Assembly: GCA_950097015.1 (NCBI GenBank) | Contig: CATNEN010000029.1 | Span: forward strand, 5,270,001-5,334,000 | Direction: 5' to 3' | Length of the DNA: 64,000 nucleotides | Source of the DNA: Macrostomum hystrix | Lineage: Eukaryota > Animalia > Platyhelminthes | Shown here: positions 8,465-62,674 of the stretch, piece after piece | How positions within the stretch are numbered: the first letter of the stretch is position 1 | How the letters are laid out: each line of letters starts with the position of its first letter | The notes under the pieces: model-generated | Database searches by the model: none | The model's input: the letters and a program-made list of their open reading frames with translations, nothing else | Told to the model about the DNA's origin: nothing | Program-made: the position numbers and the translations under genes

Positions 8465-9604
8465 ATGACAGATGCTGCAGCAGCGGCCGAGGCTGCACCC
8501 CTGCCTCTGATCTGCTTGTCCGTGTCGGTGCTGGTTAACTGCAGTCACCTGATCCTGGCCACCTCGCTGACCGAACTGCGCCGACTGTACAACTGGCCAC
8601 TGCTGGCGCCGTTGACGATGCACCTGGTGGCCGGAGTCTGCCAGCTCGTTGCCAGCGCCGCGGAGCGCTCCTGGGCAGCCGCTGACGCCGCCGGCGGTGG
8701 CAGCCTGGGGCTTGCCGCGGCAAACGCGTGCGCTCACCTGTGCCACCTGCTCACCGCCTCCTGGACCCTCTGCGCCGCCGTCGTCCTCTGGCGTCGGCAC
8801 AGAATCTGCCATAGTCAGCAGCAGTTCCATGGCGGCGTCGGCGGCGAGGTGGAGACAGCGGCCGCCAACTCCGACTGGTCCGTGAGGCTTCGCTGTCTGG
8901 CCCTCAGCGCGCTGTTCAGCTCGCCTTTCCTGACAGCCGGCCTGTTCGGCAGGTCCGTGGGCCTTGACACGGCCCGCTACAATGCCAGCCTGGCGCTGAT
9001 CTTTCGACGGCAAAGAAACTGCAGCGACCCGGTCCAGTTGGCGACAGCTTCTGACGAGCTTCAACGAGCCGCGGCGTCGCATGCCTGGCTGCTATTCCTG
9101 CCCGCACTGCTGGCCTACAGCCTTCAGCTACCGCCGCTGCTGCTGGCGTCAGCGGCCTCGGCTGGAGCCAAAGGCGTCATCGTCAACGGCGTCAGCTTGG
9201 AGATGGCGCCTGAGCTGCAGATGGCGGCGCAGACCTTGGCGCACACCCGGCGGGCGCTGGTGAAGTTCGCCGCCACCAGCCTGGCGGTGCAGGCCAGCGG
9301 GCTGCTGTCTATGGCCAGATTCAGCGGCTGCGACGGCGCCTGCCTCTGGTACGCGCACTACATTCTGCAGTCTCTGCAGGCGATCTTCATGGCAGTCAGC
9401 TGCCTGCTGGCGCGCGGCCCAGTTGAAGCCCTGGCCGATGCGTGCGGCAGCGGCGTCGGCGGCGGCATTCTGGGCGTCGGCGGCGTCAGGGAGGACACAA
9501 AGCTAGAGTCGGGACTGGGCCGGCTGGCGGCGGCGATGAATTCGCGGAAGGCGCCGCCTGCACCGATAAGACGGGGATGCGCGTACAGGAGGGCGGCCAG
9601 CTAG
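8465..9604 (+). CDS. Divergent Methuselah-like / class B-type 7TM GPCR (379 aa; may be the 3' exon only)
   Basis: GC-rich ORF with ~7 hydrophobic segments. TM1-ICL1 ICLSVSVL..LILATSLTELRRL resembles Mth-like I.lSiS....L....lPELRNl; TM7 LQSLQAIF resembles class B LNSLQGvF. A candidate splice acceptor lies at 8457. Confidence 0.65.
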   Translation: MTDAAAAAEAAPLPLICLSVSVLVNCSHLILATSLTELRRLYNWPLLAPLTMHLVAGVCQLVASAAERSWAAADAAGGGSLGLAAANACAHLCHLLTASWTLCAAVVLWRRHRICHSQQQFHGGVGGEVETAAANSDWSVRLRCLALSALFSSPFLTAGLFGRSVGLDTARYNASLALIFRRQRNCSDPVQLATASDELQRAAASHAWLLFLPALLAYSLQLPPLLLASAASAGAKGVIVNGVSLEMAPELQMAAQTLAHTRRALVKFAATSLAVQASGLLSMARFSGCDGACLWYAHYILQSLQAIFMAVSCLLARGPVEALADACGSGVGGGILGVGGVREDTKLESGLGRLAAAMNSRKAPPAPIRRGCAYRRAAS

Positions 9605-10721: not shown

Positions 10722-12519
10722 CAAGGACCACTAGAAGAAGATGGACGGGACATTTAGTTTCTTGGAAAATTTATTAATGGCAGATTTTCACGGAAAACGC
10801 GAGATAGGAACTTTTCACTTTTTTACATTGGAATATTAACATTTTAATGTGCAAAAACGTGAAAAGTTACTTTCTCGCGAGTGAATTTTTCCTTGAAAAT
10901 CTGGCTTTAATAAATTTTCCCAAGAAACGAAGTGCGATCCCGTCCTTCTTCTTCGAGTTGTCCTGTGTGAGTGCGTGTGCCTTCGCATTGTCACGAAATT
11001 CTGTTCTTTATCTATTAAATCTCTCCAACAGACAGAACTGATTTGCTGCAGAAATGGGAAGCAAAATAGTCTAGAATTGACGGCCTAAATTTATCCCATG
11101 TGGATAATATCCCAAATAGTCGTCAGGCACAGCCTAGGCGATACTGTCCAAAAAGGGGGTCGTGCCAGTAAAGAATGTCTCCTTTGTCTCCTTTGTGACA
11201 AAGGCGAGAATTCGTGTATTTACATATTTTACAAACCGGCGACTTTACTGGCTTCCGAGGCAGAGCTTAAGCAACATTTTTCTCTCCGAACACACAAATA
11301 AAATTTTCAACACATAAGATCTTCATTTTGGACATTTATGAATTCATTTTTTCGACTAGTATCTCTTGTAAGCTTTATAAGCGATTAATCAACGAAAGAT
11401 GCGAGCAGGTAAGGTTTTCAAAGTGCAGCAGATAGGCGCAGAGTCTATGGCAGAAAGAATTAAATTAGCCTATTTTATCAATTAATTAATCTAAGCCAGC
11501 TAAAGCTGAAACACTGTCACTATCTGGTTCGCATTGCCCTGTCTATAAAGTAGGCCTCACCAAAGCATCGAGGAGACTGTCTGGAGACATCGCTACACTC
11601 GTTTCCTCCAAATTTAAGACTCTAGAACAACAATGTTTCAAATGTCTTAACAAAATCCGTATTTATTATTATATGTTAGATCTAAAAAAACTACCTACTA
11701 TAAGTAGGAAAGCAGGCAAATACAAGTCTTGAAACTTGGTTAAACCTTCATTAAAAAACTGTTTTCATATATCACTGTGTGCTTAAGACTAGAAATATGT
11801 GGTTTTTAAATACCCACATTTATCTTTCTCCCGTGTCTCCTAATATCTTCAACCAATCGCCTTGAAAATACAGTACTTCTAGAACATCGGCCTCGTCGTG
11901 GTTTCTGGTGGCAAAAACCACCAATAGAGGCATAATTTTCTTGCTCATAAATTTTCATCATGTAACCATGTCGGCGATCATTTTTAAAATATTGTATTGT
12001 TAATTACTATATTATTGAATGAATATGGATTCGCCATAGGGGTGTTTATGCAGTGCAATGTTAGCTGTCCATGTCACCAGGGTCTTCGACAAGAATCGCT
12101 GATTATCTCGACGATGCTGAAGTCGGACAGCTATGAAAGTTTGTTCATTGTAAAGGGTGGAAAGCTTTTATCCAAAACGGTGGACTGTCACGAAAATCGG
12201 TCATTCGGTTTGGGAGCTATTGTAAAGTGTATTTGAAATACTCCTGCATGTGGTATTTCGACTGTTAACTATTGCTTGTGGTGTCTGTACGCTCGTAATC
12301 AGCGACCCAAACCCCCTTCAAAATTCTAGTGAACTCTGAGCGAGCAATCCGATTGCGCATTGCCAATATGACGGCAACTGATAAGCGGTTACATTTTAGG
12401 CAACGATTGCACTTTGAACTTTGAACCGAAAGGCGTCACGTATAGTATAGTTTCATTATCACAAAAAGTCTTCAAGTCTTGGTTTTCTATTTACAATTCA
12501 AAACAATAATTATCCTAGA

Positions 12520-12775
12520 TCTCTGATTGGCTAAATCTTCTAACCCTGTCTAAAACGCCTCCCCTTCAGGATCTCAGATTTGCTGTAATTAATCAAGGAT
12601 TGGACTGCTAATCCTACGTCCAAAACTCCTACTTCTCGAAGATCTCTGATTGGCTAAGACTTATTGACTGCCAACCCTGTCTAAAACGCCTTCCCTTTCA
12701 GGAATTCTGATTGTCCGTAATTAATAAAGCTATTGGACTTGTTAAATTTGTCAAAATCCTCTGATTGGTAGAAAA
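12520..12775. repeat. Diverged ~120-bp tandem duplication, each unit starting with CTCTGATTGG (reverse CCAAT box)
   Basis: CTCTGATTGG at 12521, 12644 and 12759; ACCCTGTCTAAAACGCCT present twice. Confidence 0.7.
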
Positions 12776-12996
12776 TCTACGTGCCATTTTCCAGAGCTTT
12801 AACTTGGAACATCACTGATTGAAAAAAAACAAAGTACTCAATTTACCATACGAGTATTCAGTCACAAAACCAAAAACCCAACCAGTAGGCCGTCTAGCTG
12901 AGACTGAGATATATTATGAAGTTTTGAATGCAAAAAATCGTTACTTTAGCAGGAACAAAATGATAAGACCAAATTTAAGATTCCAAAGTGGCAGTC

Positions 12997-13914
12997 TCAG
13001 AGTTCATCCGCGTCATGCAACAGCATCGACTGCTGCCGTTGCCACAGTCGCCGGCAGTCATCGCCGCTGAGCCGGACCGCGCAAGAAAATCCGTGACTCA
13101 CGAGCTCCTGGCGGAGCCCGCTGCCGCCGCTGGAGCTGTTTGAAGAGCGCGAGAGCTCCAGGCGACCGCGATAGCGCCAAGCACCGGCCGCCGTGCCGCA
13201 ATAGCTCAACATGAGCCGCTCGCCCCTGTCCTGCTCAGTAAGCCAGCTCAGCCGCCAGGCCTCCGTCACAGCCTGGCCAACCTTCGTCAGGCTGAGCAGC
13301 AGGGTGCCGTTCTCCGGCCAGACCGCCGCCACCTGCCGTCGCAATTTCACTGGCGAGCCTTCGAATATGAAGCCGCCAACGACGAAGCCGGCGTCACCGT
13401 CTAGTAGCTCGCCGCGGCACGGATGACAGTCGTGAAACGGATGTCCGCCACGGACTGCGAACCAGAGCCCGCTGACTTCGGACAGAGCAGCGGGCGGGCC
13501 CCAGGCCTGCAGCTGGTCCGGGCGACAGTCATCCTCAGAGCCGCCGTCATCCTCGGCACTGGCTGACGCTGGCGCCCTCAGCTGGACGCAGTTGTGCTCG
13601 GTGACTGCGCAGTTGAGAAACTCGGTGAGCAGTCGCACAGCCTTGCACCGGTACAAGCAGGCGGCGGAGCAGGTGTCACCGGAGTCCACGCAGGAGTGCA
13701 GGCAGGTGAGGCAGGCCCGACAGTCGGCGTTGACGGCGCATGAGTAGGACTGGCCAGGACAGCTGTAGGCGATGCACCAGGCGTCCAAGGAGTGACCGGC
13801 GGCGGCGGTGGCAGAGCGCAGCGCATCCAAGGCAGCAGCGGAGGCGAGCTGCGGCTGTGCGCCCAGATGGACCAGGAGTGCCACTAGTAGCAGATTAATT
13901 ACCTGACGATGCAT
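12997..13914 (-). CDS. Secreted violaxanthin de-epoxidase (VDE)-family lipocalin-domain protein, 305 aa, intronless
   Basis: Signal peptide, then a Cys-rich domain with VDE spacing (C-x4-C-x6-C-x5-C-x5-C-x3-C...C-x3-C-x15-C-x6-C; EFLNCAVTEHNCV vs plant VDE EFNECAVSRKKCV). Lipocalin motif SGLWFAVRGGHPFHDCHPC vs NGKWYITSGLNPTFDAFDC; C-terminal W...YCG..GAW.Y.G...SR vs WY...YRG.NDAWDGYGG...TR. Confidence 0.8.
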   Translation of the reverse strand: MHRQVINLLLVALLVHLGAQPQLASAAALDALRSATAAAGHSLDAWCIAYSCPGQSYSCAVNADCRACLTCLHSCVDSGDTCSAACLYRCKAVRLLTEFLNCAVTEHNCVQLRAPASASAEDDGGSEDDCRPDQLQAWGPPAALSEVSGLWFAVRGGHPFHDCHPCRGELLDGDAGFVVGGFIFEGSPVKLRRQVAAVWPENGTLLLSLTKVGQAVTEAWRLSWLTEQDRGERLMLSYCGTAAGAWRYRGRLELSRSSNSSSGGSGLRQELVSHGFSCAVRLSGDDCRRLWQRQQSMLLHDADEL

Positions 13915-14334
13915 GTTTCTTATTTGAGGCCAATTAAGTCACATTGCATGTGGACATAATTATATGCAGAATTGAGACTGCGGTCTAAAGTGTCTCATTG
14001 GCTTGTCAGTTCTATCTAAATGTGCTCATTATCTAATACTTTAGCTATTAAACAAATGGACGGAAGCTCCTATCCCACCTGACATTCGACTGTATGTGTG
14101 AGCCGCAGAAAGTGTACCAAAAATGCAGCTCTCACTTTCTGCTTCAAATTCTTCGAGATTGAGGTAAAACGAGATAGCCCGCCAGAGTCACCTGAAGGTG
14201 CGGGACACAGCGGACTTTGCTCCGTAACTGCACACTTTTTGCAGCGCCTGTAACGTTAAGCACCGCCATTATACGAGTGAAGCCAAAGTAATAGCAGAGA
14301 ATCGTACCTTTAGTCAAAGGATAGCAGACAATGA

Positions 14335-17300
14335 CAGCTCAAATCAAGAAATAATGGTTGGAAATGACAGCTTAAATCAAGGAAATGACGGCTCAAATCA
14401 AAGAATGGCAGGAAATGGCGTCTAAGATCAAGGAATGACAGAAAATCGCGGTTAAAATCAAAGAATGGCAGGAAATGGCGTCTAAGATCCAGGAATGACA
14501 GAAAATCACGGTTAAAATCAAAGAATGACATGAAATGCCGTCTAAGATCAAATAATGACAGGAAATGCCGTCTAAGATCAAAGAATGACAGGAAATGGCG
14601 TCTAAGATCAAAGAATGACAGGAAATGCCGTCTAAGATCAAGGAATGACAGGAAATGCCGTCTAAGATCAAATAATGACAGGAAATGCCGTCTAAGATCA
14701 AAGAATGACAGGAAATGCCGTCTAAGATCAAGGAATGACAGGAAATGCCGGTTAAAATCAAGGAATGACAGGAAATGCCGGTTAAAATCAAGGAATGACA
14801 GGAAATGCCGGTTAAAATCAAAGAATGACAGGAAATGCCGGTTAAAATCAAGGAATGACAGGAAATGCCGGTTAAAATCAAGGAATGACAGGAAATGCCG
14901 GATAAAATCAAGGAATGACAGGAAATGCCGTCTAAGATCAAAGAATGACAGGAAATGCCGGTTAAAATCAAGGAATGACAGGAAATGCCGGTTAAAATCA
15001 AGGAATGACAGGAAATGCCGTCTAAGATCAAAGAATGACAGGAAATGCCGTCTAAGATCAAAGAATGACAGGAAATGACGGTTAAAATCAAAGAATGACA
15101 GGAAATGCCGTCTAAGATCAAGGAATGACAGGAAATGATGGTTAAAATCAAAGAATGACAGGAAATGATGGTTAAAATCAAAGAATGACAGGAAATGCCG
15201 TCTAAGATCAAAGAATGACAGGAAATGATGGTTAAAATCAAAGAATGACAGGAAATGACGGTTAAAATCAAAGAATGACAGGAAATGCCGTCTAAGATCA
15301 AGGAATGACAGGAAATGATGGTTAAAATCAAAGAATGACAGGAAATGACGGTTAAAATCAAAGAATGACAGGAAATGCCGTCTAAGATCAAGGAATGACA
15401 GGAAATGATGGTTAAAATCAAAGAATGACAGGAAATGCCGTCTAAGATCAAGGAATGACAGGAAATGATGGTTAAAATCAAAGAATGACAGGAAATGCCG
15501 TCTAAGATCAAAGAATGACAGGAAATGCCGTCTAAGATCAAGGAATGACAGGAAATACCGTCTAAGATCAAATAATGACAGGAAATGCCGTCTAAGATCA
15601 AAGAATGACAGGAAATGCCGTCTAAGATCAAGGAATGACAGGAAATGCCGGTTAAAATCAAGGAATGACAGGAAATGCCGGTTAAAATCAAGGAATGACA
15701 GGAAATGCCGGTTAAAATCAAAGAATGACAGGAAATGCCGGTTAAAATCAAGGAATGACAGGAAATGCCGGTTAAAATCAAGGAATGACAGGAAATGCCG
15801 GTTAAAATCAAGGAATGACAGGAAATGCCGTCTAAGATCAAAGAATGACAGGAAATGCCGGTTAAAATCAAGGAATGACAGGAAATGCCGGTTAAAATCA
15901 AGGAATGACAGGAAATGCCGTCTAAGATCAAAGAATGACAGGAAATGCCGTCTAAGATCAAAGAATGACAGGAAATGACGGTTAAAATCAAAGAATGACA
16001 GGAAATGCCGTCTAAGATCAAGGAATGACAGGAAATGATGGTTAAAATCAAAGAATGACAGGAAACGCCGTCTAAGATCAAAGAATGACAGGAAATGCCG
16101 TCTAAGATCAAGGAATGACAGGAAATACCGTCTAAGATCAAATAATGACAGGAAATGCCGTCTAAGATCAAGGAATGGCAGGAAATGATGGTTAAAATCA
16201 AAGAATGACAGGAAATGATGATTAAAATCAAAGAATGACAGGAAATGCCGTCTAAGATCAAAGAATGACAGGAAATGATGGTTAAAATCAAAGAATGACA
16301 GGAAATGACGGTTAAAATCAAAGAATGACAGGAAATGCCGTCTAAGATCAAGGAATGACAGGAAATGATGGTTAAAATCAAAGAATGACAGGAAATGACG
16401 GTTAAAATCAAAGAATGACAGGAAATGCCGTCTAAGATCAAGGAATGACAGGAAATGATGGTTAAAATCAAAGAATGACAGGAAATGCCGTCTAAGATCA
16501 AAGAATGACAGGAAATGCCGTCTAAGATCAAGGAATGACAGGAAATACCGTCTAAGATCAAATAATGACAGGAAATGCCGTCTAAGATCAAAGAATGACA
16601 GGAAATGCCGTCTAAGATCAAGGAATGACAGGAAATGCCGGTTAAAATCAAGGAATGACAGGAAATGCCGGTTAAAATCAAGGAATGACAGGAAATGCCG
16701 GTTAAAATCAAAGAATGACAGGAAATGCCGGTTAAAATCAAGGAATGACAGGAAATGCCGGTTAAAATCAAGGAATGACAGGAAATGCCGGTTAAAATCA
16801 AGGAATGACAGGAAATGCCGTCTAAGATCAAAGAATGACAGGAAATGACGGTTAAAATCAAAGAATGACAGGAAATGCCGTCTAAGATCAAGGAATGACA
16901 GGAAATGATGGTTAAAATCAAAGAATGACAGGAAATGACGGTTAAAATCAAAGAATGACAGGAAATGCCGTCTAAGATCAAGGAATGACAGGAAATGACG
17001 GTTAAAATCAAAGAATGACAGGAAATGCCGTCTAAGATCAAAGAATGACAGGAAATGCCGTCTAAGATCAAGGAATGACAGGAAATACCGTCTAAGATCA
17101 AATAATGACAGGAAATGCCGTCTAAGATCAAGGAATGACAGGAAATGCCGGTTAAAATCAAGGAATGACAGGAAATGCCGGTTAAAATCAAGGAATGACA
17201 GGAAATGCCGGTTAAAATCAAAGAATGACAGGAAATGCCGGTTAAAATCAAGGAATGACAGGAAATGCCGGTTAAAATCAAGGAATGACAGGAAATGCCG

Positions 17301-17740
17301 GTTAAAATCAAGGAATGACAGGAAATGCCGGTTAAAATCAAAGAATGACAGGAAATGCCGTCTAAGATCAAAGAATGACAGGAAATGACGGTTAAAATCA
17401 AAGAATGACAGGAAATGCCGTCTAAGATCAAGGAATGACAGGAAATGATGGTTAAAATCAAAGAATGACAGGAAATGACGGTTAAAATCAAAGAATGACA
17501 GGAAATGCCGTCTAAGATCAAAGAATGACAGGAAATGACGGTTAAAATCAAAGAATGACAGGAAATGCCGTCTAAGATCAAAGAATGACAGGAAATGCCG
17601 TCTAAGATCAAGGAATGACAGGAAATACCGTCTAAGATCAAATAATGACAGGAAATGCCGTCTAAGATCAAGGAATGGCAGGAAATGATGGTTAAAATCA
17701 AAGAATGACAGGAAATGACGACTGAACTCAAAGAATGACA
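14335..17740. repeat. 30-bp satellite AAGAATGACAGGAAATGCCGTCTAAGATCA (~113 copies; two main variants TCTAAGATCA / GTTAAAATCA)
   Basis: Direct tandem repeats with recurring multi-unit blocks. Confidence 0.97.
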
Positions 17741-18597
17741 GCGAAAAATAACAAGACATATACAAGAGCATTCAGCAATAGTTTTACCCAAGACTGCGGT
17801 AAAAATGTGGAAAAGAAAAAAGACAAAATAAAACATCCAAACCTAACGCTGTATAATGTATTTATGTATATAATTATATATGTAGGTATATATGCTTGAG
17901 AAAAGCACGGGTTAAGGGGTGGGCATGTGCAGCGGGCTTGCAAAATAGAATGATGCTCATACTACTGAATATAGTAGTCATGAGGAGCAAGATTGATAAA
18001 TAAATAAACAAAAAGTTTAAGCGGTATTTAGCACAAAAAGCAACTGTTATTTTTGAATTCGGATAAACTAAAAAAACTGTAAAACTGAGGGGAAAAACAC
18101 ACACACATGCGGAATACGCGCACGGCCTGGACACAACTGTCGCAGCTGTTGTAGAAAAAGACAAGATAAATAATAAAACAGGCTACTCGGCAGAAGTTTT
18201 TTGGTCTAGTCAGAATCACTTCCCAGTCCATGCTATATTAGCAGTTCGAACTAGTGACCCAATAAATCACTGTCTTAAAAATGTTAGGCTTTTAAACGCC
18301 TATTACTGTTAGTAAGTAGCAAAACATTTTCAACAAACACACAATATAGACAAATAATACCAAATTGAATTTTGATTTAGCATGCACGCAAGCGATAGTG
18401 GCAAACGAATGAGAGAAAAAACAACAATGCACAGGACACAGATAACAATGATTTTGTAGTGGCTAGCTCACATTAGTTTGTTCAGACTTTTGCATGATTG
18501 GCACTGAACTAGTGTCACTGAGAATGATACAGATTTAACTTTTTTTTCTAATTTTCAAGCTCTGATTTTGTTCTGTAAATCAGATGTCTGAACTTTC

Positions 18598-19476: not shown

Positions 19477-19824
19477 TCAGGAAGTGGCGCCGGATAATTC
19501 AACAGTCGGCTGAATGTCGCTCAGTTCAACAGTGTTGGCATCCGCGCCGGCATCGCCAGCGTCGCCAATTTCAGCAGCAACCGCAGCCGCGTTGTCGTGC
19601 GATGCGCCGCCGCTATCAGCGAAAATAACTGAGACAGCTCCATCGGCAAAGGACTCCTGCTGCTGTTGTGGCTGCTGCTGCGGCGGCGGTTGCAGCGAAA
19701 ATGGTGGCGGATTTTCGCAAATAAACTCGGAAACTGAAGAGGCGGCCGACAATCTCTCCATATAAGGCAGTAGATCGCGCAGCTCAGTGTCCAACTGATC
19801 TCCAACCCAGGTGCGCACTCGAAT
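19477..19824 (-). CDS. CTDSP: CTD small phosphatase (SCP/NIF family), exon 5 (last)
   Basis: CAG acceptor then IRVRTWVGDQLDTELRDLLPYMERLS, like [26 protein letters not shown]; low-complexity polyQ/Ala tail; stop at 19477. Confidence 0.9.
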   Translation of the reverse strand: MRVRTWVGDQLDTELRDLLPYMERLSAASSVSEFICENPPPFSLQPPPQQQPQQQQESFADGAVSVIFADSGGASHDNAAAVAAEIGDAGDAGADANTVELSDIQPTVELSGATS

Positions 19825-19950
19825 CTGCATTGGTTAGGAGCCGAAATCGGGTCACTGTTCACCTACTTTTACAGTCTGCTGATGGCATGCTATTCTAGGC
19901 ATATTTGGAGACGTACGCATTCATAACCATCAATTTCAAGCTAAACTCAC

Positions 19951-20136
19951 AGCGTTCTCCGTGTTAAACATGTAGGAAGCCGGTGAGTTGTCAATAATAA
20001 CACACCGATCTACAGGCCGGCCCAACTGGGCCAGGTCTTTTACAAAATTGTCACCGTGAAAGACGCACGATTCGCGGAATAGGCGATATTTGAAGGCCGA
20101 CCACCGGTCTAGACGGTCAGATACCGGATCAGCGTA
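19951..20136 (-). CDS. CTDSP: CTD small phosphatase, exon 4
   Basis: [62 protein letters not shown]; cag / gtgagt boundaries, phase 0. Confidence 0.95.
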
Positions 20137-20270
20137 CTGTGGGATGGTTAGGGATTATAACTGAGGATCTGGGAGGGTTCCGTGTGAGAATCTGAGGATT
20201 TGAGAGTGTCAGATCACAAAGATACCAACTAGTATCACTGGGTAGAAGCAGTGGTCAGAGCAGTTCTTAC

Positions 20271-20420
20271 CTTGGCCAGGCTAGCGGTGAACAGCACGCA
20301 TTCAAATAGCTGGCCCATTCGCTCCAGGAACTCATCAGTGAAAGGACGCTTGAGCACATAGACCTGGTGCACCAAGCCTTCGATTTCAACGTCAATGATG
20401 AAATCTGGATCGTCAACGTA
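20271..20420 (-). CDS. CTDSP: CTD small phosphatase, exon 3
   Basis: [50 protein letters not shown]; cag / gtaaga boundaries. Confidence 0.95.
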
Positions 20421-20949
20421 CTGAAGTGATGCAGATGCGAATTGTGTTAATAAAGAGCGAAGCGTAACTATGAAGTTCCATTATAAAATGGCCAATGCTA
20501 AACGCATGCTGAAGGTCCCGAAGCTTGGATTGATCCGCTAAAGTTATTTGGGGTGTAGCGGCGGAGGTGTAGCGGCGGACTTGGGGACTTGTCGTGCAAT
20601 TTAAGCCTTTTTTACCTATTTTACGCCCGAGTACACTGTCACTAAATAAAGTACCAATGCCCCACAGCCCGGGGGCGAGTGGGTCAGCGGCTAACGTCGC
20701 TGCCTCGCACTCCAAAGGACGCTAGTTCGATTCACCCTTCAAGTCACGATTAATTTCGGGACTTGTTGGGGGGGTTTGGACAGTAGCGACCGGCGGAGGT
20801 GCACCATATTTCGTGCAATCAAAGCTTGAAATAATAGCTTCGCTCCTGCCTTCTGTGTGCCTGCTTGTTTGTGTTTGTGTTTGTGCGTTGGGCCGGGTGT
20901 GAGGCGTTGTATGGGGGGTGGGGCGGGTGTGCACCAGCCATGCGTGCTC

Positions 20950-21254
20950 TGAGCGGCGAGGTTTCACCAGCCGTCTGCGCGCGTGGCTTGGTCCTCTCGT
21001 CCCTACCCTTAAGGCATATAAGTCCTCCCCTGGTTTGGTCAGCTCTGTGCGTGTGCGGGCCTGGGGGTGAGAGGCACTCCGGCTGCCGCCCCCTTCCCCG
21101 CTTGGCTTGCGGCTGTGTATGAGGTGCCTGTGTTCAGGGGTCTAGATGGCGCGATGGGCGACTCCCGCCTAGTTCGCCGGCCTGGGGGCATGCCGTTCCT
21201 GCGCTTGTGCGTCAAGTGCCCCAGGCCCCCCTGCAATTAAGTAAAGTAAGTAAG
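20950..21254 (+). mobile_element. Possible 3' end of a non-LTR element with a (GTAA)n tail, intronic
   Basis: GC-rich non-coding block ending TAAGTAAAGTAAGTAAG inside an AT-rich intron; no coding homology seen. Confidence 0.3.
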
Positions 21255-21338
21255 CCCCACAGCCCTGCACTTAGATCGTATTGTTATTATTTTGGGCACA
21301 CTAATCCACCTATACTAAATTAAGCCCTAAACTCGGAC

Positions 21339-21703
21339 CTTAAATGAGCTGTGCACTAGAGTCTCATCCAGATCGATCACTGCACAAATGCGGTCTCCCA
21401 AGTTAGGATCTCGCGGACCCAGTAGATCAATGGAGAAAGTCTGGCCGCCATTGTGATGATAACGATGGTGCTGCAGGTGTTGCTGCTGCTGCTGCTGCCG
21501 CTGATTGCGCCTAGCAGAGGTGCGCCGGTCCGGGCAGAAACAGCAGAACAGTTCACGAAGTAAGCGGGGTTTGGATCTTTCGCGTGCGGGTGTCACAGCT
21601 GTTACTGTTGCTGGTGCTGTTGCTGGCGCAGCTGTTTGTGGCTTTGTTGAGTCCTCCTGGGCATTTGAACTGCCTTCCTCACTGAGTGCCACCGTGGAAT
21701 CTC
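21339..21703 (-). CDS. CTDSP: CTD small phosphatase, exon 2 (contains catalytic DLDET)
   Basis: LLRELFCCFC motif and ICAVIDLDETLVHSSFK (DxDxT). Acceptor ttcatag is phase 1; donor AAG/gtccga. Confidence 0.93.
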
Positions 21704-29812: not shown

Positions 29813-30380
29813 TGTGAATATCCGACAATGTGATTCTAATCAAGGCTGAAAAGCTTACATCGATGTCCAGACGCAGTATGCGAATGCTTCTCTGCATGGA
29901 CAGGAAAATCTGAAAGGGTATGGAAACCGTTAGAATAGCCGCAATGGTGAGACAGTGCCTGCGCCGCCTCTCAAGCTTTTGTAGAATCGTTGCCAGGTAC
30001 CTGCCCTTAACTGGCAGAATCAGGTAGAAGCTGAGCACCGCGCAGATCAGGCTCATCAGGCCAGACACAACATTCAGCACGCACAATAGAAAGTTGTACC
30101 AGGGTGGTTTGAAAAGTTCCATGTTCACTTGATTCACTTGTTTCATGTTGACAAGAGTGTACAGGCTGGGCACCACAGTGCAATAGATGTTTGCCAGGTA
30201 GTTGGCATAGTAACAGATGTAGTAGATTACGCAGGGTAGCGGCAAGCCGATGCCTAACAGTATCAGAACGCTGGCCATATTGGGGTGGCTGTTAACGAAC
30301 TGATAGGACTCTAGTAACTGCTCATAAGTGCTGAACCGTCTGATGGACTCTGGCACAATGGGTTTTGTGACTTGTTGCAA
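29809..30380 (-). CDS. Divergent tetraspanin-like protein, exon with TM1-TM3 (start uncertain: ATG 30278 or an upstream exon)
   Basis: Three hydrophobic helices with a basic intracellular loop (LERRRRH); donor AG/gtattt at 29809. The listed ORF start is TTG. Confidence 0.65.
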
Positions 30381-30519
30381 ACAAATACTGCTTTAGCTGC
30401 GATATGAGTACGCGCATTTTATCCTGCTGCTCGACATTAAAACTTATTAAGGTTCGTAGATTTATAATCCCAAGTTGTTGAGATGACCTAAGTTGACTAT
30501 AGATCCCGCGGGCAAGATG

Positions 30520-32045
30520 CGCTCTCATCTCTTCCCTGTCTCATATTTCCACTATCTCCTCTTTCCCCTGTCTCATCTCTCCCGTGTCTCCCGTCTCTCT
30601 CCCGTGTCATCTCTCCCGTGTCTCATCTCTCCCGTGGCTCATCTCGTCCCTGTCTTATCTCTCCCGTGTCTCATCTCTCACTTGTCTCATCTCTCCCCTG
30701 TCTCATCTCTCACGTGTCTCATCTCTCCTGTGTGTCATCTCTCCCGTGTCTCATCTCTCCCCTGTCTCATCTCTCTAGTGTCTCCCGTCTCTCTCCCGTG
30801 TCATCTCTTCCTGTCTCCTCTCTTCTCTGTCTCATTTATCCCATTTCTCATCTCATATCATCTCTGACTAGTCCCTCCCCCTGTCTCTTCTATCCCATGC
30901 CTCATCTCTCATATGTCTCATCTCTCCCCTGACTCATCTCTCCCCTGTCTCATCTCTCCCCTGACTCATCTCTCCCCTGTCTCATCTCTCCCCTGTCTCA
31001 TCTCTCCCGTGTAATCTCTCCCCTGTCTCATCTCTCCCCTGACTCATCTCTCCCCTGTCTCATCTCTCCCCTGTCTCATCTCTCCCGTGTAATCTCTCCC
31101 GTGTCTCATCTCTCACTTGTCTCATCTCTCCCCTGTCTCATCTCTCACGTGTCTCATCTCTCCTGTGTGTCATCTCTCCCGTGTCTCATCTCTCCCCTGT
31201 CTCATCTCTCTAGTGTCTCCCGTCTCTCTCCCGTGTCATCTCTTCCTGTCTCCTCTCTTCTCTGTCTCATTTATCCCATGTCTCATCTCATATCATGTCT
31301 GACTAGTCCCCCCCTGTCTATTCTATCCCATGCCTCATCTCTCATGTGTCTAATCTCTCCCCTGTCTCATCTCTCCCCTGACTCATCTCTCCCCTGTCTC
31401 ATCTCTCCCCTGTCTCATCTCTCCCGTGTAATCTCTCCCCTGTCTCATCTCTCCCCTGTCTCATATCTCCCCCGTCTCCTCTCTCCCCTGTCTCATCTCT
31501 CTAGTGTCTCCCGTCTCTCTCCCGTGTCATCTCTTCTTGTCTCCTCTCTTCTCTGTCTCATTTATCCCATTTCTCATCTCATATCATCTCTGACTAGTCC
31601 CTCCCCCTGTCTCTTCTATCCCATGCCTCATCTCTCATATGTCTCATCTCTCCCCTGTCTCATCTCTCCCCTGACTCATCTCTCCCCTGTCTCATCTCTC
31701 ACGTGTCTCATCTCTCCCGTGTGACATCTCTCCCCTGTCTCATCTCTCCCGTGTAATCTCTCCCCTGTCTCATATCTCCCCCGTCTTATCTCTCCCCTGT
31801 CTCATCTCTCCCGTGTCTCCCGTCTCTCTCCCGTGTCATCTCTTCTTGTCTCCTCTCTTCTCTGTCTCAATTATCCCATTTCTCATCTCATATCATCTCT
31901 GACTAGTCCCTCCCCTGTCTCGTCTATCCCATGCCTCATCTCTCATGTGTCTCATCTCTCTCCTGTCTCATCTCTCCAATGTCTCCTCCCTTCACTGTCT
32001 TATCTCTTATATGCCTCATCTATCCTGTGTCTCATCTCACCTCTT
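30520..32045. repeat. Pyrimidine-rich 16-bp minisatellite CTCATCTCTCCCCTGT with four larger blocks marked by TGACTAGTCC
   Basis: Direct repeats; marker block recurs near 30866, 31300, 31592 and 31900. Confidence 0.92.
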
Positions 32046-33513: not shown

Positions 33514-34480
33514 TCAGTCAATTTCAAGCTGCAACCTGTCTGGCCGATTCCGAATCCGCTCGGGGTAGCGCCTCACCGAGCTGCCCGGCGGCTCAGTAGC
33601 CGCTGCCGTTTCCACTGACGCAGAGTCCGGAGCATCTGAAATCCCGCTAGCCGCATTCGATACCACTGGCGCCCGGTCTGTTCCAGGCTCGACCTCAGGT
33701 TGCACTGATGCGATCGATGGTGCGGCTGCACGAGCTGAGCACCGCGGACTGGAGTCGATGGTGGCAGACGGTATGGTCGGCTCAGACAGCATCTGGTCGA
33801 TGTGGCGGCGTACGATGCCGTCGCCGACCTGGACATCATAGTTGCGCTGGGCCGCATAAACCACGGTACCGGACGCCCAGCCGGCGTCCTCGCCGAAGCC
33901 CTTGACTCGAGCCCTGTCGCCGATCTCGAACCCGGTCCACCACTGACGGCCGCGGGAGGTCCAACCTGGAGCGCAGCCGGCGCCCGAATAGCAGCTCGCT
34001 GGGAGACACGCCGGTTGTTGAATGCGGCGTGATTCGGTATGCGAACATGAAGTTTTGCAGCGCCGCAGCAGAGTGACCGGACTTTCTGATGTGCACCTTC
34101 AGCGTTGGGACGAACCGCTCGGCTTGGCCGTTGGTTGCCGGATGATATGGCGCCGATGTTATCTGTCGAATACCGTTGCGGCTGGCGAATTCAGAGAACT
34201 CCTTTGACGAGAACTGTGGACCGTTATCGGAGACTAGTATGAGAGGTAGGCCCAGGTGGCTGAAGACGTCTCGCAGATGAGCGATGGTGCTACCGGCTGA
34301 GGTGTCAGTCATCTGTCAAACCTCTAGCCACTTGCTGTGCGCGTCGATGATAATCAGATAGACTCGACCGTCGACAGGGCCGGCGAAATCGACGTGAACC
34401 TTGATGCGTTGGAGTGCGTTGGAGCCTTGATCGGATCAGCCTGATGAGCTTTGCAGGTTTCGCATGTTCGCGCCAGCTGC
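33514..34480 (-). mobile_element. Ty3/Gypsy LTR retrotransposon integrase fragment (pseudogenised)
   Basis: CETC zinc ligands; VHVDFAGP..YLIIIDAHSKWLEV* (in-frame stop); LVSDNGPQFSS; PYHPATNGQAERFV; YRITPHSTTGVSPSELLFGRRLRSRLD; PERIRNRPDRL tail. Confidence 0.92.
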
Positions 34481-40696: not shown

Positions 40697-41956
40697 TCAC
40701 AGAGAGACGCTGACTTCTTCCAGCCCGCCAGCAGCCGTCACGGAGTTGCTCTCACCACCAGGCTGGCAGAGTGCCTCAGCCTGACGATTCTGCTGCACCG
40801 TCCGCAGCCGCAACAGTTGCTGATGCTGCAGCTGCTGCGATGGCGTAGCAAGTGGATGACGTCTCCGCCCGCGGCAGCCGAGCAGTCGCATGAAGGCACG
40901 GCGGAAATCGCGCATGGAGTGCGCGTAGATGGCCGGGTTCACAGCGCTGTTGCAGTAGCCCAGCCACGTCACCACGGCCAGCAGCAGCTTCTCGTACTGG
41001 CCGAGGCCGCCTGGCCCGCTCAGGGCCGACAGCGAGCTGCAGACAAAGAACGGCAGCCAGCAGGCGATGAAGACGCCCATCACAATGCCCAGTGTTTTTG
41101 CGGCGCGGCGCTCACGCGAGAAGCGGGCGAATTGCTTACGGCGCGAGGCCGGCAAGCCGCTGCGCCCGTCGTTGAACTGATTCTGCTCCTGGCCGTCAGC
41201 GACACCTTCCTGCTCATCAGCGGGCGTCAAGCCGCCGCCTCCGCCGCCTCGGTGAATGCGCAGCACCACGGTGGCCTGGGTGCCATGACCGCGCAGGACT
41301 TTCGCGCCTTCACGCCAGCTGCGAACTAGCCGGGCCGCGGTGCGGTAGATCTTGCAGTACACGAACACCATCACTAGCAGGGGCGCGTAGAAGGACACCA
41401 GCGAGGAGCAGATCAGGTAGGCCGGATCGCTGGTGAAGCTGCAGACGCTGGGCAAGCGGCTAGTCGGACTGGTCGAACGCCACCAGGCGATGGCGGGAAA
41501 GCTGATGAGGCTGGAACAGAGCCAAACAGCGGCAATCATCAATAGACAACGTCGCTTTGTGACCCTGGACGGATAGCGCATGGGGTTCTGCACTGCCCAG
41601 TAGCGCTCCAGCGCAATCATGCACAGGTTCAGAATGCTGGCCGTGGAGCTTAGGACGTCGAACGCGTGCCAGAGGTCGCACCAGACGGGGCCAAACAGCC
41701 AGCGCTCGCGAGTTGCCTGGGCGATGGCGGCGAACGGCATGACAACGGCGCCCATCAGCAGGTCGGCGGTGGCCAGCGACACGATCAGGTAGTTTGTCAC
41801 GGTGCGTAGGCAGGGCTCCCGCAGGACGGCCAGGATCACCAGGCAGTTGCCAAGCACCGTGACGCAGGCCAGCAGGCTTAGTAAACAACCAATCAGAGCG
41901 TCCTGCGGCTGCACTTCCGGGGACAGGGCGCTGTAGTTCATTTCAATCATTCCCAT
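40697..41956 (-). CDS. Dop1R2: Biogenic amine GPCR, invertebrate-type dopamine receptor (INDR / Dop1R2-DAMB-like), intronless
   Basis: WCDLWHAFDVLSSTASILNLCMIALERYWA (D3.32), AAVWLCSSLISFPAIAWWR, TM5 SSLVSFYAP serines, RERRAAKTLGIVMGVFIACWLPFF, WLGYCNSAVNPAIY. First ATG at 41956. Confidence 0.85.
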   Translation of the reverse strand: MGMIEMNYSALSPEVQPQDALIGCLLSLLACVTVLGNCLVILAVLREPCLRTVTNYLIVSLATADLLMGAVVMPFAAIAQATRERWLFGPVWCDLWHAFDVLSSTASILNLCMIALERYWAVQNPMRYPSRVTKRRCLLMIAAVWLCSSLISFPAIAWWRSTSPTSRLPSVCSFTSDPAYLICSSLVSFYAPLLVMVFVYCKIYRTAARLVRSWREGAKVLRGHGTQATVVLRIHRGGGGGGLTPADEQEGVADGQEQNQFNDGRSGLPASRRKQFARFSRERRAAKTLGIVMGVFIACWLPFFVCSSLSALSGPGGLGQYEKLLLAVVTWLGYCNSAVNPAIYAHSMRDFRRAFMRLLGCRGRRRHPLATPSQQLQHQQLLRLRTVQQNRQAEALCQPGGESNSVTAAGGLEEVSVSL

Positions 41957-43914
41957 CAAAATTGGACGTAAAAACAATGCTATTTCTCGCACTCTGTTTC
42001 AATGGGACTGCATGAGTGAGAATTTATACAGGGGGAATCAGGCCGTGTGGGAAAGGGAAAAGCGTAGATTTTGGCCAATAGGAATCGAGGCAGATGCTGC
42101 TGCGCTTGCAGTCTGCGTTCGTATGAGCGTCGCCTCACGCACCCTCGGTCTCCCTCCACCAAAAATTCTTGACGCTGAAGGAATCCGTATCTCACATTGT
42201 AGCCAGTGGGAGTGAAGAGTTTTGAATTTGTTTGTCAGCGCACATGCGGGACACTGCAGTGCGGAACAGCCCTAACTGCCAGGCATCGAGAAACCGCCGA
42301 TCAGATCACGGGTACAGTTGGTATACAAGACTTGGGATTCGGGCCAGTCTGTCAAGGTCACTTCCTAGAGGCTGCAGACGTGAACGATTAACATCGAAGG
42401 GAGAGAGGAACGTTCCATACGACGCTAAAAGTCTTTAGTAGTTCAAACAGAAACTTCAGAAGGATTTGCAAGCGCATCCCCCGTGTACGCATGGGAGCTA
42501 CAGTGCAAGAGAGTGACAGGGATGGGATTTTAATATGTAAATTCAAGTGTCTAATTGTCGATATACGTGCGACACTAGCGACGGGTTTAGGCAAAACTAT
42601 CCGATCTGCATTGAGAGTGCTTTATGTACAGAAACGCTTTGTAAATTTGAATGCTTTGAAAGCAAGAAATGATTGAGAAAATTTATGTGCATTAAAAACA
42701 ATAGGCGGAGACAAACGAGGAGAGACAGACGCGAAGAAGCAAGACACAAATATGATATGAAAAGCAGCTATTTTACTATTTCATATCGACTGACACTTAA
42801 GAAAATTAGTTTCGATAATATACTTTTAAAAGACGAAATTCTCTGAATAAGTGGCATTTCAAGGATCGTACAATTCTGTCCTTTTTTTCAACAGGCCCGT
42901 TAAAATGGCTCTTCAACCCATTTTCCATGTAGAAGATGCAAAAGAAATAGAATACAGAATATTGTATTACAGAAGTTCATGCTTCTAGATTGCTTTGTTA
43001 CCTGCAATGTTTTAGCCTAAAGCTGGCAATTCAATCGTCATGCATTTTTTGAGTGTCTCAAATAGCACTTATCGAACAATCATCCTTCTGAAATTGTATA
43101 TTGAATAAATTTTACTGTAATGGTCTCATTGTAATTGAAGCATTTCATGCTGTTCCTTCCTATTCTACGATCCATATGAAGTGTTCGGGGTTCGGGTCTC
43201 CGGGTTTCCATGCATAAAATAGCGTGTGCCAACCTTCTGCGCTCAAAACAGAAACGTGATGTGACATATTCATATGACATATTTTTGTTGTAGCGAACTA
43301 ATGCGATCATTGCTTGATACTCTCATTTGCTCATAATTTCTAAAACAATGATTACAAGCATTTCTTTCGCCAGAAGCCAACGTTTAAAAAAGTTGCTTAT
43401 GTTTTTAAACCGAATTTGTAGAATTTGAAGTGCCTGAGGCCTTGAGTAGCTGAGGGTGAGGAAATTGGTACTTGAAGACACCTCATTGTTCGTCATTCCA
43501 GAAAATAAAAAAAATTTCTTCAATAAAACATGAATCTTCAAGCCTACTGCATGCTCTTCGGGTATAGTTGGGTGTCGGGTCGACAGCGACCACCCGAACA
43601 TCCCGAACTGCTACATTAATTTCTGTGGCATGGGCGCAAAGAAACAGGCAATCATTCTTGGAAAAGTGTTTCGACCAAATCCCCGGTGACTTCGGCAGCA
43701 AATCAACATAAGCCCGATCTGTGTTTCTATGTGCGGAGTTGCGAGATTTGGTTGACCAAAAACTTCCCAGGCCAGATTTTGATGAAATCAGCTGAGAGAC
43801 ATAGTTTATGGGCCAATCCTGCCCCAGTCTCCATTGGGTGAAATGCAGTATTAGATGAGTGCGTTCATGTTTAGACAGTAGAGCAAAAATTATGACAGAA
43901 AGAGGCACCAAACT

Positions 43915-48690: not shown

Positions 48691-50594
48691 AAGAACTGGC
48701 TTTCAACTTGATTTTCTTATTTTCGTAATACGAGTATGATGCTGGATAAATCAGTTGCATTTTTCCACCAATTTATAACAATGTGCACGCCACTCGAAAC
48801 TTGCAAAAAACTAATTATTTACCAATTTCAATCCCAATTCATATGCGTGTGGCATCGTAATTCACATGATGTTGGACGCAATATGCAATGACCAGAGGCA
48901 TAATGGATGGTGACTGTCCTGTCAGAAGAGGTGCACTCTCTCAAAAAGTGTCTGCGTTGCCCAAGGCGGTTGCTATGCAAGCAGATCCATTCAGCGGAGC
49001 ATTGTCTCTTAATTGAGCTTCAATCAGGCTGCCATAATTCAGTTTCTGGCTCTATTTGAGCACTAGGCCTCTTCCTTTATCTTCTCTCATCTAAAGATGA
49101 GAGATGCATCGCTTTTATGACTTGCTTTGACTAATAGCGAATCGAGACTCGTCAAAGGGCTTTACCTTGCGGGCCTTGCGTCTCCTTTGTCGACTACTTT
49201 AGTGCGGCGATGAATTGGCTCCGTGACTGGGCATTGAATTTCCCCTCAGCTGCCAAGCGGTTCGGCGTCGCGCAGTTCCGCCATGACGAGTGAGCTGCCC
49301 CAAATTTTAATAACCGCTTTTTGGTTTAATTTACGAGTTACTCCCGCAAACACACTTTATTGCGTGTTCTTCAAAGTCACTGTTTTAGACCAGGCCCACG
49401 CTTCCTTGTCTTTATAGAATTGTATTGCACAAGATATTAACTATCACATCGTCCAACTATGTTTAATTGAAAATGCTGTATTATACGAGCATTAATACCC
49501 ACTGCCTACTTCACGATAGCTCCCAAACCGAATGACCGAATGACCAATAATTAACAATAAAATCAACAAAATTTGCCGACACGATTACACTACGAGTAAG
49601 AAATATTGTGAGCTGAAAATTTATGGATTTTTGCCTGTGTTCTGGATTTTAATGGCGATTGGTTGAATGTTTTGGGAGATACAGAAAAAAGAAAGATGTG
49701 GGTGTTGGAAATACCACGATCGTGGTCTTTCTACAGTTAATAATTTTCCGGGTGAGTTCGATGCGCTTTTACAAACTGGTGGACTATGTAGGGTGGCATT
49801 CACTGCAAGTTAAAAAAACTCACTGCAGCATCACTTTGATCGAACTCTCCAGGAAAGTTTCTGGTCTAGCATTTGTATGGATTGGATGGATTTGCTCTGA
49901 ATGTATAGCATCAATGTTCAACCGGATTTAGTCGTCAAATTTTCCTGTAAATCATTTTCCGTAATTGTCTAGCGTTGCCTAAACTGGTCGCTTCTCTAAA
50001 CTGAGTGGCTATATGTTCTATAAGCTCCGGTGCACTCAACGTACACTTTAGAGTGAAGGTGAAGCTTCAGATTCTTCACTAAAAGCAAAATCCTGAGGTG
50101 GGGCTAATCGATCCATTAGAACGTTGAGCATGTGACGCTGAAAAAGATGCTACCTGACCGAGCTATTCCCATTTCAGGCAAAAAAATGTCACCCATTTGT
50201 AAAGCCTGCTTCATGCTCTGCCTAACTCTGTTAATCTCTCTTCTGTGGGATTTTTAGTCGAAATGCCTTGCTTGAGCTCAGTATTAATTCTCATTTTGAA
50301 ATTAGAACTTTCCTTGGCTCAGGGAAGGTCCACTCCTCACTCCGCACTTCTCTTAGAGGAACCAAACGACAGATCGTGGAAATAAAGTTGAGCCTAATCA
50401 GCAGCTTACGAGGGTAGGAATCGTAATAAAAATATCAACTGTTCGTCGCGACACATGACGTGGATAAAACTATTCATGGCAGGGAGGTCCAAAGAACTGT
50501 GCCAAATCCAACTAAACCTTGACTTGCCGTAGAACTTAGATAAGCTACAAGTTGAATTCGCATATATTACGACTACTGTAGTCTATGGGTAAGT

Positions 50595-61879: not shown

Positions 61880-62674
61880 GGGACTGGTACAAGAGGACTG
61901 GGAAACTCTGGTACAAGAAGGACTGGGAGACTCTGGTACAAGAAGGACTGGGAGACACTGGTACAAGAGGGACTGGGAGACTCTGTTACAAGAGGGACTG
62001 GGAAACTCTGGTACAAGAGGGACTGGGAGACTCTGGTACAAGAGGGACTGGGAGACACTGGTACAAGAGATACTAGGAGACACTGGTACAAGAGGACTGG
62101 GAGACTCTGGTACAAGAGGACTGGGAGACTCTGGTACAAGAGGGACTGGGAGACACTGGTACAAGAGGACTGGGAGACACTGGTACAAGAGGACTGAGAG
62201 AGACACTGGTACAAGAGGACTGAGAGAGACACTGGTACAAGAGGACTGGGAGACACTGGTACAAGAGGACTGGGAGACACTGGTACAAGAGGACTGGGAG
62301 ACACTGGTACAAGAGGACTGAGAGAGACACTGGTACAAGAGGGACTGGGAGACTCTGGTACAAGAAGGACTGGGAGACTCTGGTACAAGAGGGACTGGGA
62401 GAGACACTTGTACAAGATGGACTGGGAGACTCTGGTACAAGAGGACTGAGAGAGACACTGGTACAAGAGGGACTGGGAGACTCTGGTACAAGAAGGACTG
62501 GGAGACTCTGGTACAAGAGGGACTGGGAGAGACACTTGTACAAGATGGACTGGGAGACTCTGGTACAAGAGTGACTGGGAGACACTGGTGCAAGAGGGAC
62601 TGGGAGAGACACTTGTACAAGATGGACTGGGAGACTCTGGTACAAGAGTGACTGGGAGACACTGGTGCAAGAGG
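61880..62674. repeat. 23-26 bp minisatellite GACTGGGAGACTCTGGTACAAGAGG
   Basis: Direct repeats with length variants. Confidence 0.95.

Follow-up and report, generated by a model that had tools for sequence, protein, structure and literature searches.

This study was concerned with a stretch of 64,000 nucleotides from the genome of the flatworm Macrostomum hystrix (assembly GCA_950097015.1, contig CATNEN010000029.1, positions 5,270,001 to 5,334,000), referred to here as the window, and with one gene in it whose product belongs to the family of violaxanthin de-epoxidase (VDE), VDE-like (VDL) and VDE-related (VDR) proteins. The gene is an uninterrupted ATG-to-stop open reading frame (ORF) on the minus strand, which encodes 305 amino acids plus stop. 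An earlier note on this DNA, made from its letters alone, had described a signal-like N-terminus, a 12-Cys domain and a lipocalin in a single intronless ORF, and all of these are present. The gene belongs to a short secretory branch of the family, widespread yet unstudied, and its product, as read from the alignment, has an active site of the VDL/VDR type. The features of the gene and of its surroundings are collected in Table 1.

Table 1. The VDE-like gene, its encoded parts and other features of the window.
Feature	Window position	Strand	Evidence or remark
Complete intronless coding sequence of the VDE-like protein	12997-13914	-	ORF listing; Pfam PF07137; 72% identity to M. lignano P0001
Apparent transcript extent: coding sequence flanked by about 146 nt (3') and 93-169 nt (5')	12849-14083	-	Contigs of runs X4 and X5
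Signal-peptide-like N-terminus, residues 1 to about 26	13837-13914	-	Hydrophobic core LLLVALLVHLGA, then A-S-A at 24-26
Cys-rich domain, residues 47-109, 12 Cys	13588-13776	-	Cys positions, alignment, AlphaFold2 model
Lipocalin barrel, residues about 130-287, ending at conserved C287	13054-13527	-	Profile against 3cqn, AlphaFold2, Foldseek
D162, equivalent to D114 of Arabidopsis VDE	13429-13431	-	Invariant in 24/24 aligned members
E218, at the position of catalytic D177	13261-13263	-	V-T-E-A-W aligned to Q-D-D-W of 3cqn
Y238, equivalent to catalytic Y198	13201-13203	-	L-S-Y-C-G aligned to V-Y-Y-R-G
C-terminal ADEL (within HDADEL), tetrapeptide of the endoplasmic reticulum (ER)-retention type	13000-13011	-	Also in M. 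lignano P0001 and P0002
Site of the M. lignano intron	about 13503	-	CAG and GCC contiguous, no intron
Syntenic neighbour, multi-exon NIF/FCP1-type phosphatase gene	19477-21692	-	ORF pieces with DLDETLVHS and related motifs
Syntenic neighbour on the other side, 379-aa ORF	8465-9604	+	Window 8492-9555 matches L001 15327-16321, 70.5% over 1079 nt
Rhodopsin-family G protein-coupled receptor (GPCR) ORF, apparently intronless	40697-41992	-	7tm_1, 254.6 bits
Rhodopsin-family GPCR ORF, apparently intronless	57088-58554	+	7tm_1, 55.1 bits
Tandem repeat, 30 bp, 112 copies	14380-17746		89% matches
Long spurious ORFs produced by this repeat	14310-17836
Many partial contigs at 90-95% identity	12043-12229		High summed depth in all four runs
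Retroelement integrase fragment (rve)	33836-34312
Blocks of strong GC skew (about +/-0.4 to 0.58)	1-2000; 30001-32000; 50001-54000; 62001-64000
Many overlapping long ORFs	50545-54287

PF07137 (VDE) was the only Pfam-A family found in the encoded protein. The match scored 52.8 bits (E 4.9e-14) against a curated cut-off of 25.7 bits and joined residues 46-168 to profile positions 3-115 of 242, so the HMMER check proposed in the earlier note was passed. A hidden Markov model of the subfamily scored 217 bits on the same protein over profile positions 4-257, and PF07137 was matched by 24 of the 24 aligned subfamily members. The protein has 18 Cys in total, 12 of them in the Cys-rich domain (at 47, 52, 59, 65, 68, 71, 75, 82, 86, 90, 102 and 109) and six elsewhere (at 130, 163, 166, 239, 278 and 287). 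Across the 24 aligned members ten Cys columns are either invariant or conserved to at least 90%, and a 2026 review of VDE states that the superfamily needs about ten conserved Cys in the N-terminal domain (PMC13181403). The protein also carries the motif run G149-x-W151...G156..P159..D162-C163..C166 and a second motif, S-Y238-C-G...A-W-R-Y-R-G-R, and its terminal C287 is near-invariant. Both motifs and the terminal Cys, which had been aligned by eye, proved to be real.

A search of PDB sequences with the window protein alone returned nothing relevant, and the lipocalin domain of Arabidopsis VDE (PDB 3cqn) was reached only by the family profile. The profile of the 24 short members matched 3cqn at E 4.1e-30 over profile positions 106-269, which is the whole domain, and the next match was ApoD at E 5.6e-6. 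In the AlphaFold2 model of the window protein (predicted local distance difference test, pLDDT, 81; predicted template modelling score, pTM, 0.76) the Cys-rich region is a helical bundle with pLDDT 86-96, and eight strands lie between residues 149 and 255. The proposed Foldseek comparison with Arabidopsis VDE returned 3cqr_A as the best PDB match of this model, with generic lipocalins close behind. Compared with models of whole VDE proteins (Atlas clusters; haptophytes, plants), it gave a template modelling (TM) score of 0.67 over 241-243 residues, which takes in both domains. With its PF07137 match, about ten conserved Cys and a VDE-homologous barrel, the protein is a member of the VDE/VDL/VDR family, built of a signal-like leader, a disulfide-rich helical domain and a lipocalin barrel.

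The hydrophobic core of the leader spans residues 7-19 (Kyte-Doolittle about 2.4), and the homologues likewise begin with a hydrophobic leader immediately ahead of the Cys-rich domain. At the other end, ADEL falls in the K/H/A-DEL class of ER-retention signals, and in the alignment the other animal members terminate a few residues past the terminal Cys. The earlier note had placed the protein outside the cell. This is doubtful, because the C-terminal ADEL is conserved in both Macrostomum species, which suggests the ER or early secretory lumen as the likelier site.

Active-site residues were transferred from Arabidopsis VDE with an offset of 76 between chain and mature numbering. This mapping is secure, because the offset reproduces the thirteen residue identities given in the review: D98, T112, D114, D117, Q119, H121, F123, R138, Q153, F155, H168, D177 and W179 (PMC13181403). 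The same source states that in VDE D177 protonates the violaxanthin epoxide, that ascorbate is held near Y198, D114 and Q119, with D114 and Q119 as the ascorbate-site residues, and that H121 is the pH-switch residue; in VDL and VDR D177 is replaced by Glu, Y198 is kept and the Glu tail is reduced or absent (PMC13181403). In the window protein an acidic residue and a Tyr do stand at the catalytic positions, as the earlier note had supposed (E218 and Y238, Table 1), and W179 is kept as W220. Q119 is replaced by R167, H121 by E169 and F123 by L171. The QLHEF position accordingly reads R-G-E-L-L without the histidine, and Glu makes up 6% of the last 80 residues; thus the reported lack of this His and of a Glu-rich tail was correct. 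Because D114, W179 and Y198 are kept and Glu stands at 177, the residues give the protein a VDL/VDR-type active-site pattern and not that of a canonical VDE.

Several known proteins were compared with the window protein. VDL1 of chromalveolate algae resembles it in having a Cys-rich domain with a lipocalin, Glu at 177, W179, Y198, a reduced or absent Glu-rich tail and no ascorbate-type H121. The window protein differs from VDL1 by Arg at 119 and Glu at 121, by a plain signal peptide in place of a long plastid presequence, by its ADEL end and by its animal host. Also, although it has the VDL residues (E177, Y198, W179, reduced tail), it lies outside the long algal clade with the D114-Q119-N121-E177 signature, a clade identified as VDL by that signature and not by named reference sequences. 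Arabidopsis VDE (3cqn/3cqr) is the best solved-structure match and shares the Pfam family, the two-domain fold, D114, W179 and Y198, whereas the window protein departs from it at D177, Q119, H121 and F123, and has neither the Glu-rich C-terminal domain nor the thylakoid-lumen targeting of plant and algal VDEs. The window protein carries PF07137, and the VDR described by Coesel et al. in 2008 is without the PF07137 signature (PMC2483416), which may speak against its being a VDR in their sense.

The uncharacterised animal members (among them Haliotis rufescens XP_046346709, Magallana XP_052700485, Branchiostoma lanceolatum CAH1247036 and M. lignano BOX15_Mlig011564g1) fall in the same 260-300 aa class and have the same Cys columns and motifs. 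Those outside Macrostomum are only 20-26% identical to the window protein, and all pass PF07137. The Macrostomum proteins have in addition an Ala-rich segment of about 20 residues before the first Cys, an acidic linker and the ADEL-ending extension, and the bivalve members have Ser where the window protein has Glu (position 177). Crustacyanin and ApoD share the eight-stranded barrel (profile E 5.6e-6 to 2e-3; Foldseek TM 0.44-0.65, target-normalised), but both are carriers and not enzymes, lack the N-terminal Cys-rich domain as well as the VDE motifs, and are far more weakly related in sequence.

The closest proteins are three 'VDE lipocalin domain-containing' proteins of Macrostomum lignano, with 72% identity over 91% of the query. 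The M. lignano copies (P0001-P0003) lie on several contigs, among them contigs of 326 kb and 1.1 Mb, and nucleotide divergence between the window and M. lignano is about 20%. When L001, the M. lignano locus, was compared with the window by BLASTN, three collinear blocks appeared, which correspond to three genes. The VDE-like gene forms the middle block (L001 10062-11374, window 13853-13154). The phosphatase gene on one side forms another (window 20423-19706, L001 895-2513; the gene called there matches Pfam NIF), and the 379-aa ORF on the other side, in which no Pfam family match was found, forms the third. The animal genomic context claimed in the earlier note is therefore sound, with this synteny, the phosphatase gene and the two GPCR ORFs. 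In a Nei-Gojobori comparison of the two species the ratio of nonsynonymous to synonymous divergence (dN/dS) was 0.23-0.26, with dS about 0.7-0.8; the M. lignano exon join holds one extra junction codon, which has no material effect. The ORF is GC-rich, as had been noted (65.7%), and this is ordinary coding composition for the genome. GC-richness was rejected as a foreign signature, since GC content at third codon positions (GC3) is 76.5% in the ORF and 77% in the host GPCR ORFs. Because of the synteny, the host-like GC3, the dN/dS and the animal neighbours, the VDE-like gene is a genuine host gene of Macrostomum and is selectively constrained.

Logan contigs from sequencing runs were used to look for transcripts. 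One collinear contig per run was found in X4 (12851-14083) and X5 (12849-14007), each with four mismatches and no joints, and the adjacent DNA was at zero depth in both runs (12231-12846 and beyond 14156). The runs of a second study hold identical fragments of the gene. Logan contigs give no strand, transcript ends or expression level for it. Expression as an unspliced mRNA of about 1.2 kb is probable, because the contigs are confined to the ORF plus short flanks with zero depth on both sides, and the collinear contigs agree with the gene being intronless. The M. lignano orthologue, for comparison, has one 610-nt GT-AG phase-0 intron after Q137 (L001 10412-11021). This intron was gained or lost between the congeners, and its absence in the window species is precise; two alternative M. 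lignano gene models, P0002 and P0003, mis-handle the region. The oyster, abalone and chiton homologues are single-exon genes, and the amphioxus homologue has four exons (aa 1-83, 84-125, 126-174 and 175-286) and three introns. The amphioxus introns and that of M. lignano do not coincide in the alignment, and the window species and the molluscs are intronless; therefore introns neither support nor contradict common descent.

Some other features of the window were also recorded. The tandem repeat upstream of the gene begins about 300 bp from the apparent 5' end of the transcript. Just downstream of the gene, the many partial contigs at 12043-12229 indicate a dispersed transcribed repeat. The GC-skew blocks are probably further satellite or simple-repeat arrays, a reading that fits the many overlapping long ORFs at one of them (Table 1).

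Homologues were sought by phmmer among 1.84 billion cluster representatives, with 77 matches at E <=1e-3. Alignment-based homologue searches gave Macrostomum proteins nearly exclusively, their word-index candidates being saturated, and added no further taxa of note. The best matches outside Macrostomum are 240-290 aa long, align end to end and are at most about 30% identical. Those that carry a name come from the amphioxus Branchiostoma lanceolatum (P0005), the bivalves Tegillarca granosa (P0007), Magallana (Crassostrea) angulata (P0084) and M. gigas (P0085), the gastropods Haliotis rufescens (P0082) and H. cracherodii (P0083), the chiton Liolophura sinensis (P0014), the chytrid Quaeritorhiza haematococci (P0006), the eustigmatophyte alga Nannochloropsis oceanica (P0015) and the vampyrellid amoeba Leptophrys vorax (P0024). 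The short subfamily to which the window protein belongs is recognised by a length of about 250-300 aa, a leader directly before the Cys-rich domain and an end soon after the terminal Cys. The animal homologue genes lie on chromosome-scale scaffolds of 3-70 Mb, and several adjoin animal genes (IPK, glycosyltransferase 92, protein kinase). Some of the mollusc members are labelled 'violaxanthin de-epoxidase, chloroplastic-like' at NCBI. The chytrid protein (KAJ3084678.1) bears the NCBI name 'Vitamin D3 receptor', which is probably a mis-expansion of VDR in its sense of VDE-related. In ESM-Atlas feature searches the window protein fell beside VDE-domain clusters in which Mollusca (174 members) and Porifera (95) were the commonest phyla. 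This is a hint that the family may range widely among animals; its presence in Porifera is taken as a lead only.

The family was also found in bacteria. Two proteins, P0037 and P0063, lie on compact bacterial-type contigs, and a GTDB scan gave five loci with a VDE-family protein in metagenome-assembled genomes (MAGs), on contigs of up to 98 kb, from Deltaproteobacteria, Spirochaetales, two Proteobacteria and one genome labelled Caldiserica. The bacterial proteins have the full Cys-rich domain and lipocalin with D177, W179 and Y198 (L006-L009, L010-L014), and one of them has a lipoprotein-like leader. Because copies occur in animal chromosomes and in bacterial MAGs, the VDE family is not confined to phototrophs and is not tied to plastids. 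As to diet, bivalves and amphioxus filter-feed, abalone and chiton graze, Macrostomum is fed diatoms, Leptophrys is algivorous and the chytrid parasitises the carotenoid-rich alga Haematococcus. Thus all of the named eukaryotes with the short form, except Nannochloropsis, eat or parasitise algae.

A tree of 62 rows and 299 columns was built with IQ-TREE (LG+C20). Its VDE, VDL and VDR labels were taken from residue signatures and a single JGI name (P0044) rather than from reference sequences. The two Macrostomum sequences pair with 100/100 support on a long branch (1.98). Twenty-three proteins of 370-570 aa form the long algal clade, starred at 100/100, from which the Macrostomum pair is excluded; Q119 and N121 occur in 23/23 of these rows and E177 in 15/23. 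The pair also falls outside a starred VDE-type clade of four rows, which holds P0044, the only protein named 'violaxanthin de-epoxidase' by its source. The full Q119/H121/D177 set is present in three of these four rows, and the remaining one (P0048) carries Ala at 119 with Glu at 177. Leptophrys and bacteria form a clade starred at 99/96, with M121 and D177. All known animal rows stand in one unresolved 28-row portion of the tree together with Nannochloropsis and the chytrid. Members of this animal-containing group mostly have E177; the bivalve-type proteins P0084, P0007 and P0008 have Ser in that column, and Tegillarca is also without Y198, a pattern that suggests altered chemistry or lost catalysis in the bivalve lineage. 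The backbone of the tree is a polytomy, and the short subfamily does not come out as a supported clade. On the free tree the label 'animal' needs four changes. When the seven animal rows were constrained together the tree was 5.4 log-likelihood units worse, with a p of 0.30 in the approximately unbiased (AU) test, and because of this value a single animal clade is not rejected. A single animal origin is thus compatible with the data. On tree placement, nesting inside the VDL-like algal clade is rejected.

One rival explanation is that the sequence is a contaminant from algae or diatoms, or that the assembly is chimeric. Diatoms are the food of Macrostomum cultures. An oyster expressed sequence tag (EST) of this family was formerly suspected of being algal contamination (PMC2483416). 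We find this hardly credible for the window gene and reject it on synteny and composition: the gene sits between animal genes within the 64 kb, the same three genes occur in the same order on the 326-kb M. lignano contig, the codon composition is that of the host, independent runs from two studies contain the gene, and the M. lignano copy has a spliceosomal GT-AG intron. Transfer into Macrostomum, or separately into each animal lineage, from an alga, protist or bacterium that was eaten deserves more weight, and we consider it less likely than not. The distribution is patchy (flatworm, molluscs and amphioxus, with none listed from vertebrates, insects or nematodes), the carriers eat or parasitise algae, and bacteria also carry the family. 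In addition, the window species and three molluscs have no intron in the gene, the amphioxus and M. lignano introns do not coincide, and four changes of the animal label are needed on the free tree. Against transfer stand the AU result, the position of the Macrostomum pair outside both the VDL-like algal clade and the VDE-type clade, the host-like composition, the synteny kept between two Macrostomum species, and the prominence of Mollusca and Porifera in the Atlas clusters. No recent donor was found either. With no more than about 30% identity to the nearest sequence outside Macrostomum among the 1.84 billion representatives, the gene cannot have come recently from food algae, and an algal transfer into Macrostomum only is not supported. 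The earlier note had left the choice between an alga-derived gene and an ancient animal branch; homologues in amphioxus and three mollusc classes speak for the ancient branch, and the alga-derived option has lost ground.

Our best explanation of the function, to which we give a probability of about 0.5, is that the protein is a host VDE-family enzyme that alters xanthophyll end groups in the secretory lumen; here we infer the substrate, the chemistry and the location. The oxidised, disulfide-locked protein would bind one end ring of a dietary xanthophyll inside the barrel, and the Glu/Tyr pair would act as an acid catalyst that opens or isomerises a 5,6-epoxide, or else an allenic or acetylenic end group related to it. 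This chemistry would resemble that of the VDL1 tautomerase and not that of the ascorbate-dependent xanthophyll-cycle reductase. Because of the conserved C-terminal ADEL, its site may be the lumen of the ER or of the early secretory pathway, in those cells into which algal pigments are taken up. VDL1 is a reversible, dithiothreitol-sensitive violaxanthin-neoxanthin tautomerase, which turns an epoxide into an allenic enol (PMC7056318), and according to the 2026 review it has Glu at 177, and VDL2 is proposed to turn diadinoxanthin into allenoxanthin (PMC13181403). In bivalves and tunicates, dietary fucoxanthin and peridinin undergo a change from allene to acetylene, their epoxide is opened by hydrolysis or oxidation, and the review that describes these invertebrate conversions names no enzyme for these steps (PMC6949322). 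By analogy, carotenoid handling in dietary xanthophyll chemistry is plausible for the window protein. A bolder proposal, which is speculative and in our view rather unlikely, is that the short VDE-like proteins as a whole are old animal enzymes for 5,6-epoxide opening and allenic/acetylenic interconversion of dietary xanthophylls. Their substrates may then be fucoxanthin, peridinin, violaxanthin and diadinoxanthin, with products such as halocynthiaxanthin and mytiloxanthin, and the Macrostomum gene may be a member tractable by RNA interference (RNAi) that acts in the ER lumen of gut cells.

Several observations weigh against an enzyme of this kind in the secretory lumen. Pfam matches no more than the first half of its model (residues 46-168 of the protein), and the barrel diverges in its second half. 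At position 177 bivalves carry Ser, the chytrid Thr and P0034 Asn, and some subfamily members lose Y198. Catalysis may thus have been kept in only part of the subfamily; in the window protein itself Q119 is Arg and H121 is Glu. The signal peptide and ADEL were read by inspection of the sequence and the cleavage site is not tool-predicted. Also, runs X4 and X5 are small and come from one study, and the type of run is not on record, so that their being RNA is our reading. The main rival is a passive carrier, whose barrel would only bind and shuttle a hydrophobic ligand in the secretory pathway, such as a carotenoid, a retinoid, a sterol or another lipid; the VDE-type residues would then be relics with a structural role. 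We consider this reading doubtful, though not lightly dismissed. It is favoured by the variability at position 177, which together with the loss of Q119 and H121 makes a single catalytic chemistry, conserved throughout, less likely. As a group, lipocalins act mainly as carriers (PMC13181403), and the family profile has weak matches to the carotenoid and bilin binders crustacyanin and sandercyanin and to ApoD. However, D114 is invariant, and W179, Glu177 and Y198 are kept in most members and in both Macrostomum species despite a dS of about 0.7-0.8. Full conservation is also seen in the Cys-rich domain, without which VDE and VDL are inactive. In addition, polar residues kept in the hydrophobic cavity are taken in the same review as a sign of catalysis in VDL and VDR (PMC13181403). 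A true xanthophyll-cycle VDE, ascorbate-dependent and activated at low pH, would agree with the Pfam family name and with the retained D114, W179 and Y198. It is very improbable for a protein with Glu, Arg and Glu in place of D177, Q119 and H121, with no Glu-rich tail and no thylakoid targeting, and with a position outside the clade that carries the full D114/Q119/H121/D177 set. An enzyme acting on xanthophyll end groups in the secretory lumen is therefore kept as the preferred explanation.

Previous records of the family outside phototrophs are few. Coesel et al. placed one Crassostrea virginica EST in the VDL cluster in 2008 and judged it a probable algal contamination (PMC2483416). They also stated that no prokaryotic VDE homologue exists (PMC2483416), a statement contradicted by the VDE-domain proteins on bacterial contigs and MAGs. 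The Manila clam genome paper lists the VDE family and suggests an antioxidant role (PMC5499747). A word search of the 2020 VDL paper found no mention of animals or heterotrophs (PMC7056318), and the 2026 review, in the sections consulted, describes VDL and VDR only in photosynthetic organisms (PMC13181403). Our literature search found no characterisation of any animal VDE-family member, and a look-up of the M. lignano gene identifiers found no paper. Thus the description of this gene as part of an undescribed animal system was too strong as to the proteins, which appear in NCBI labels, in the 2008 EST and in the clam listing; it held in that none was found characterised.

In the literature VDE, VDL and VDR count as proteins of photosynthetic eukaryotes, and the animal and bacterial copies widen the family. 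The algal VDLs perform the same class of end-group chemistry as is seen in marine invertebrates, where the remodelling of algal xanthophylls is extensive. Because the algal VDLs catalyse such chemistry, the animal proteins are concrete, testable candidates for it. M. lignano is fed on diatoms and RNAi is routine in it, so the question of function is quickly answerable. If the protein is only a carrier, its disulfide-rich accessory domain would still set it apart as a new kind of animal lipocalin.

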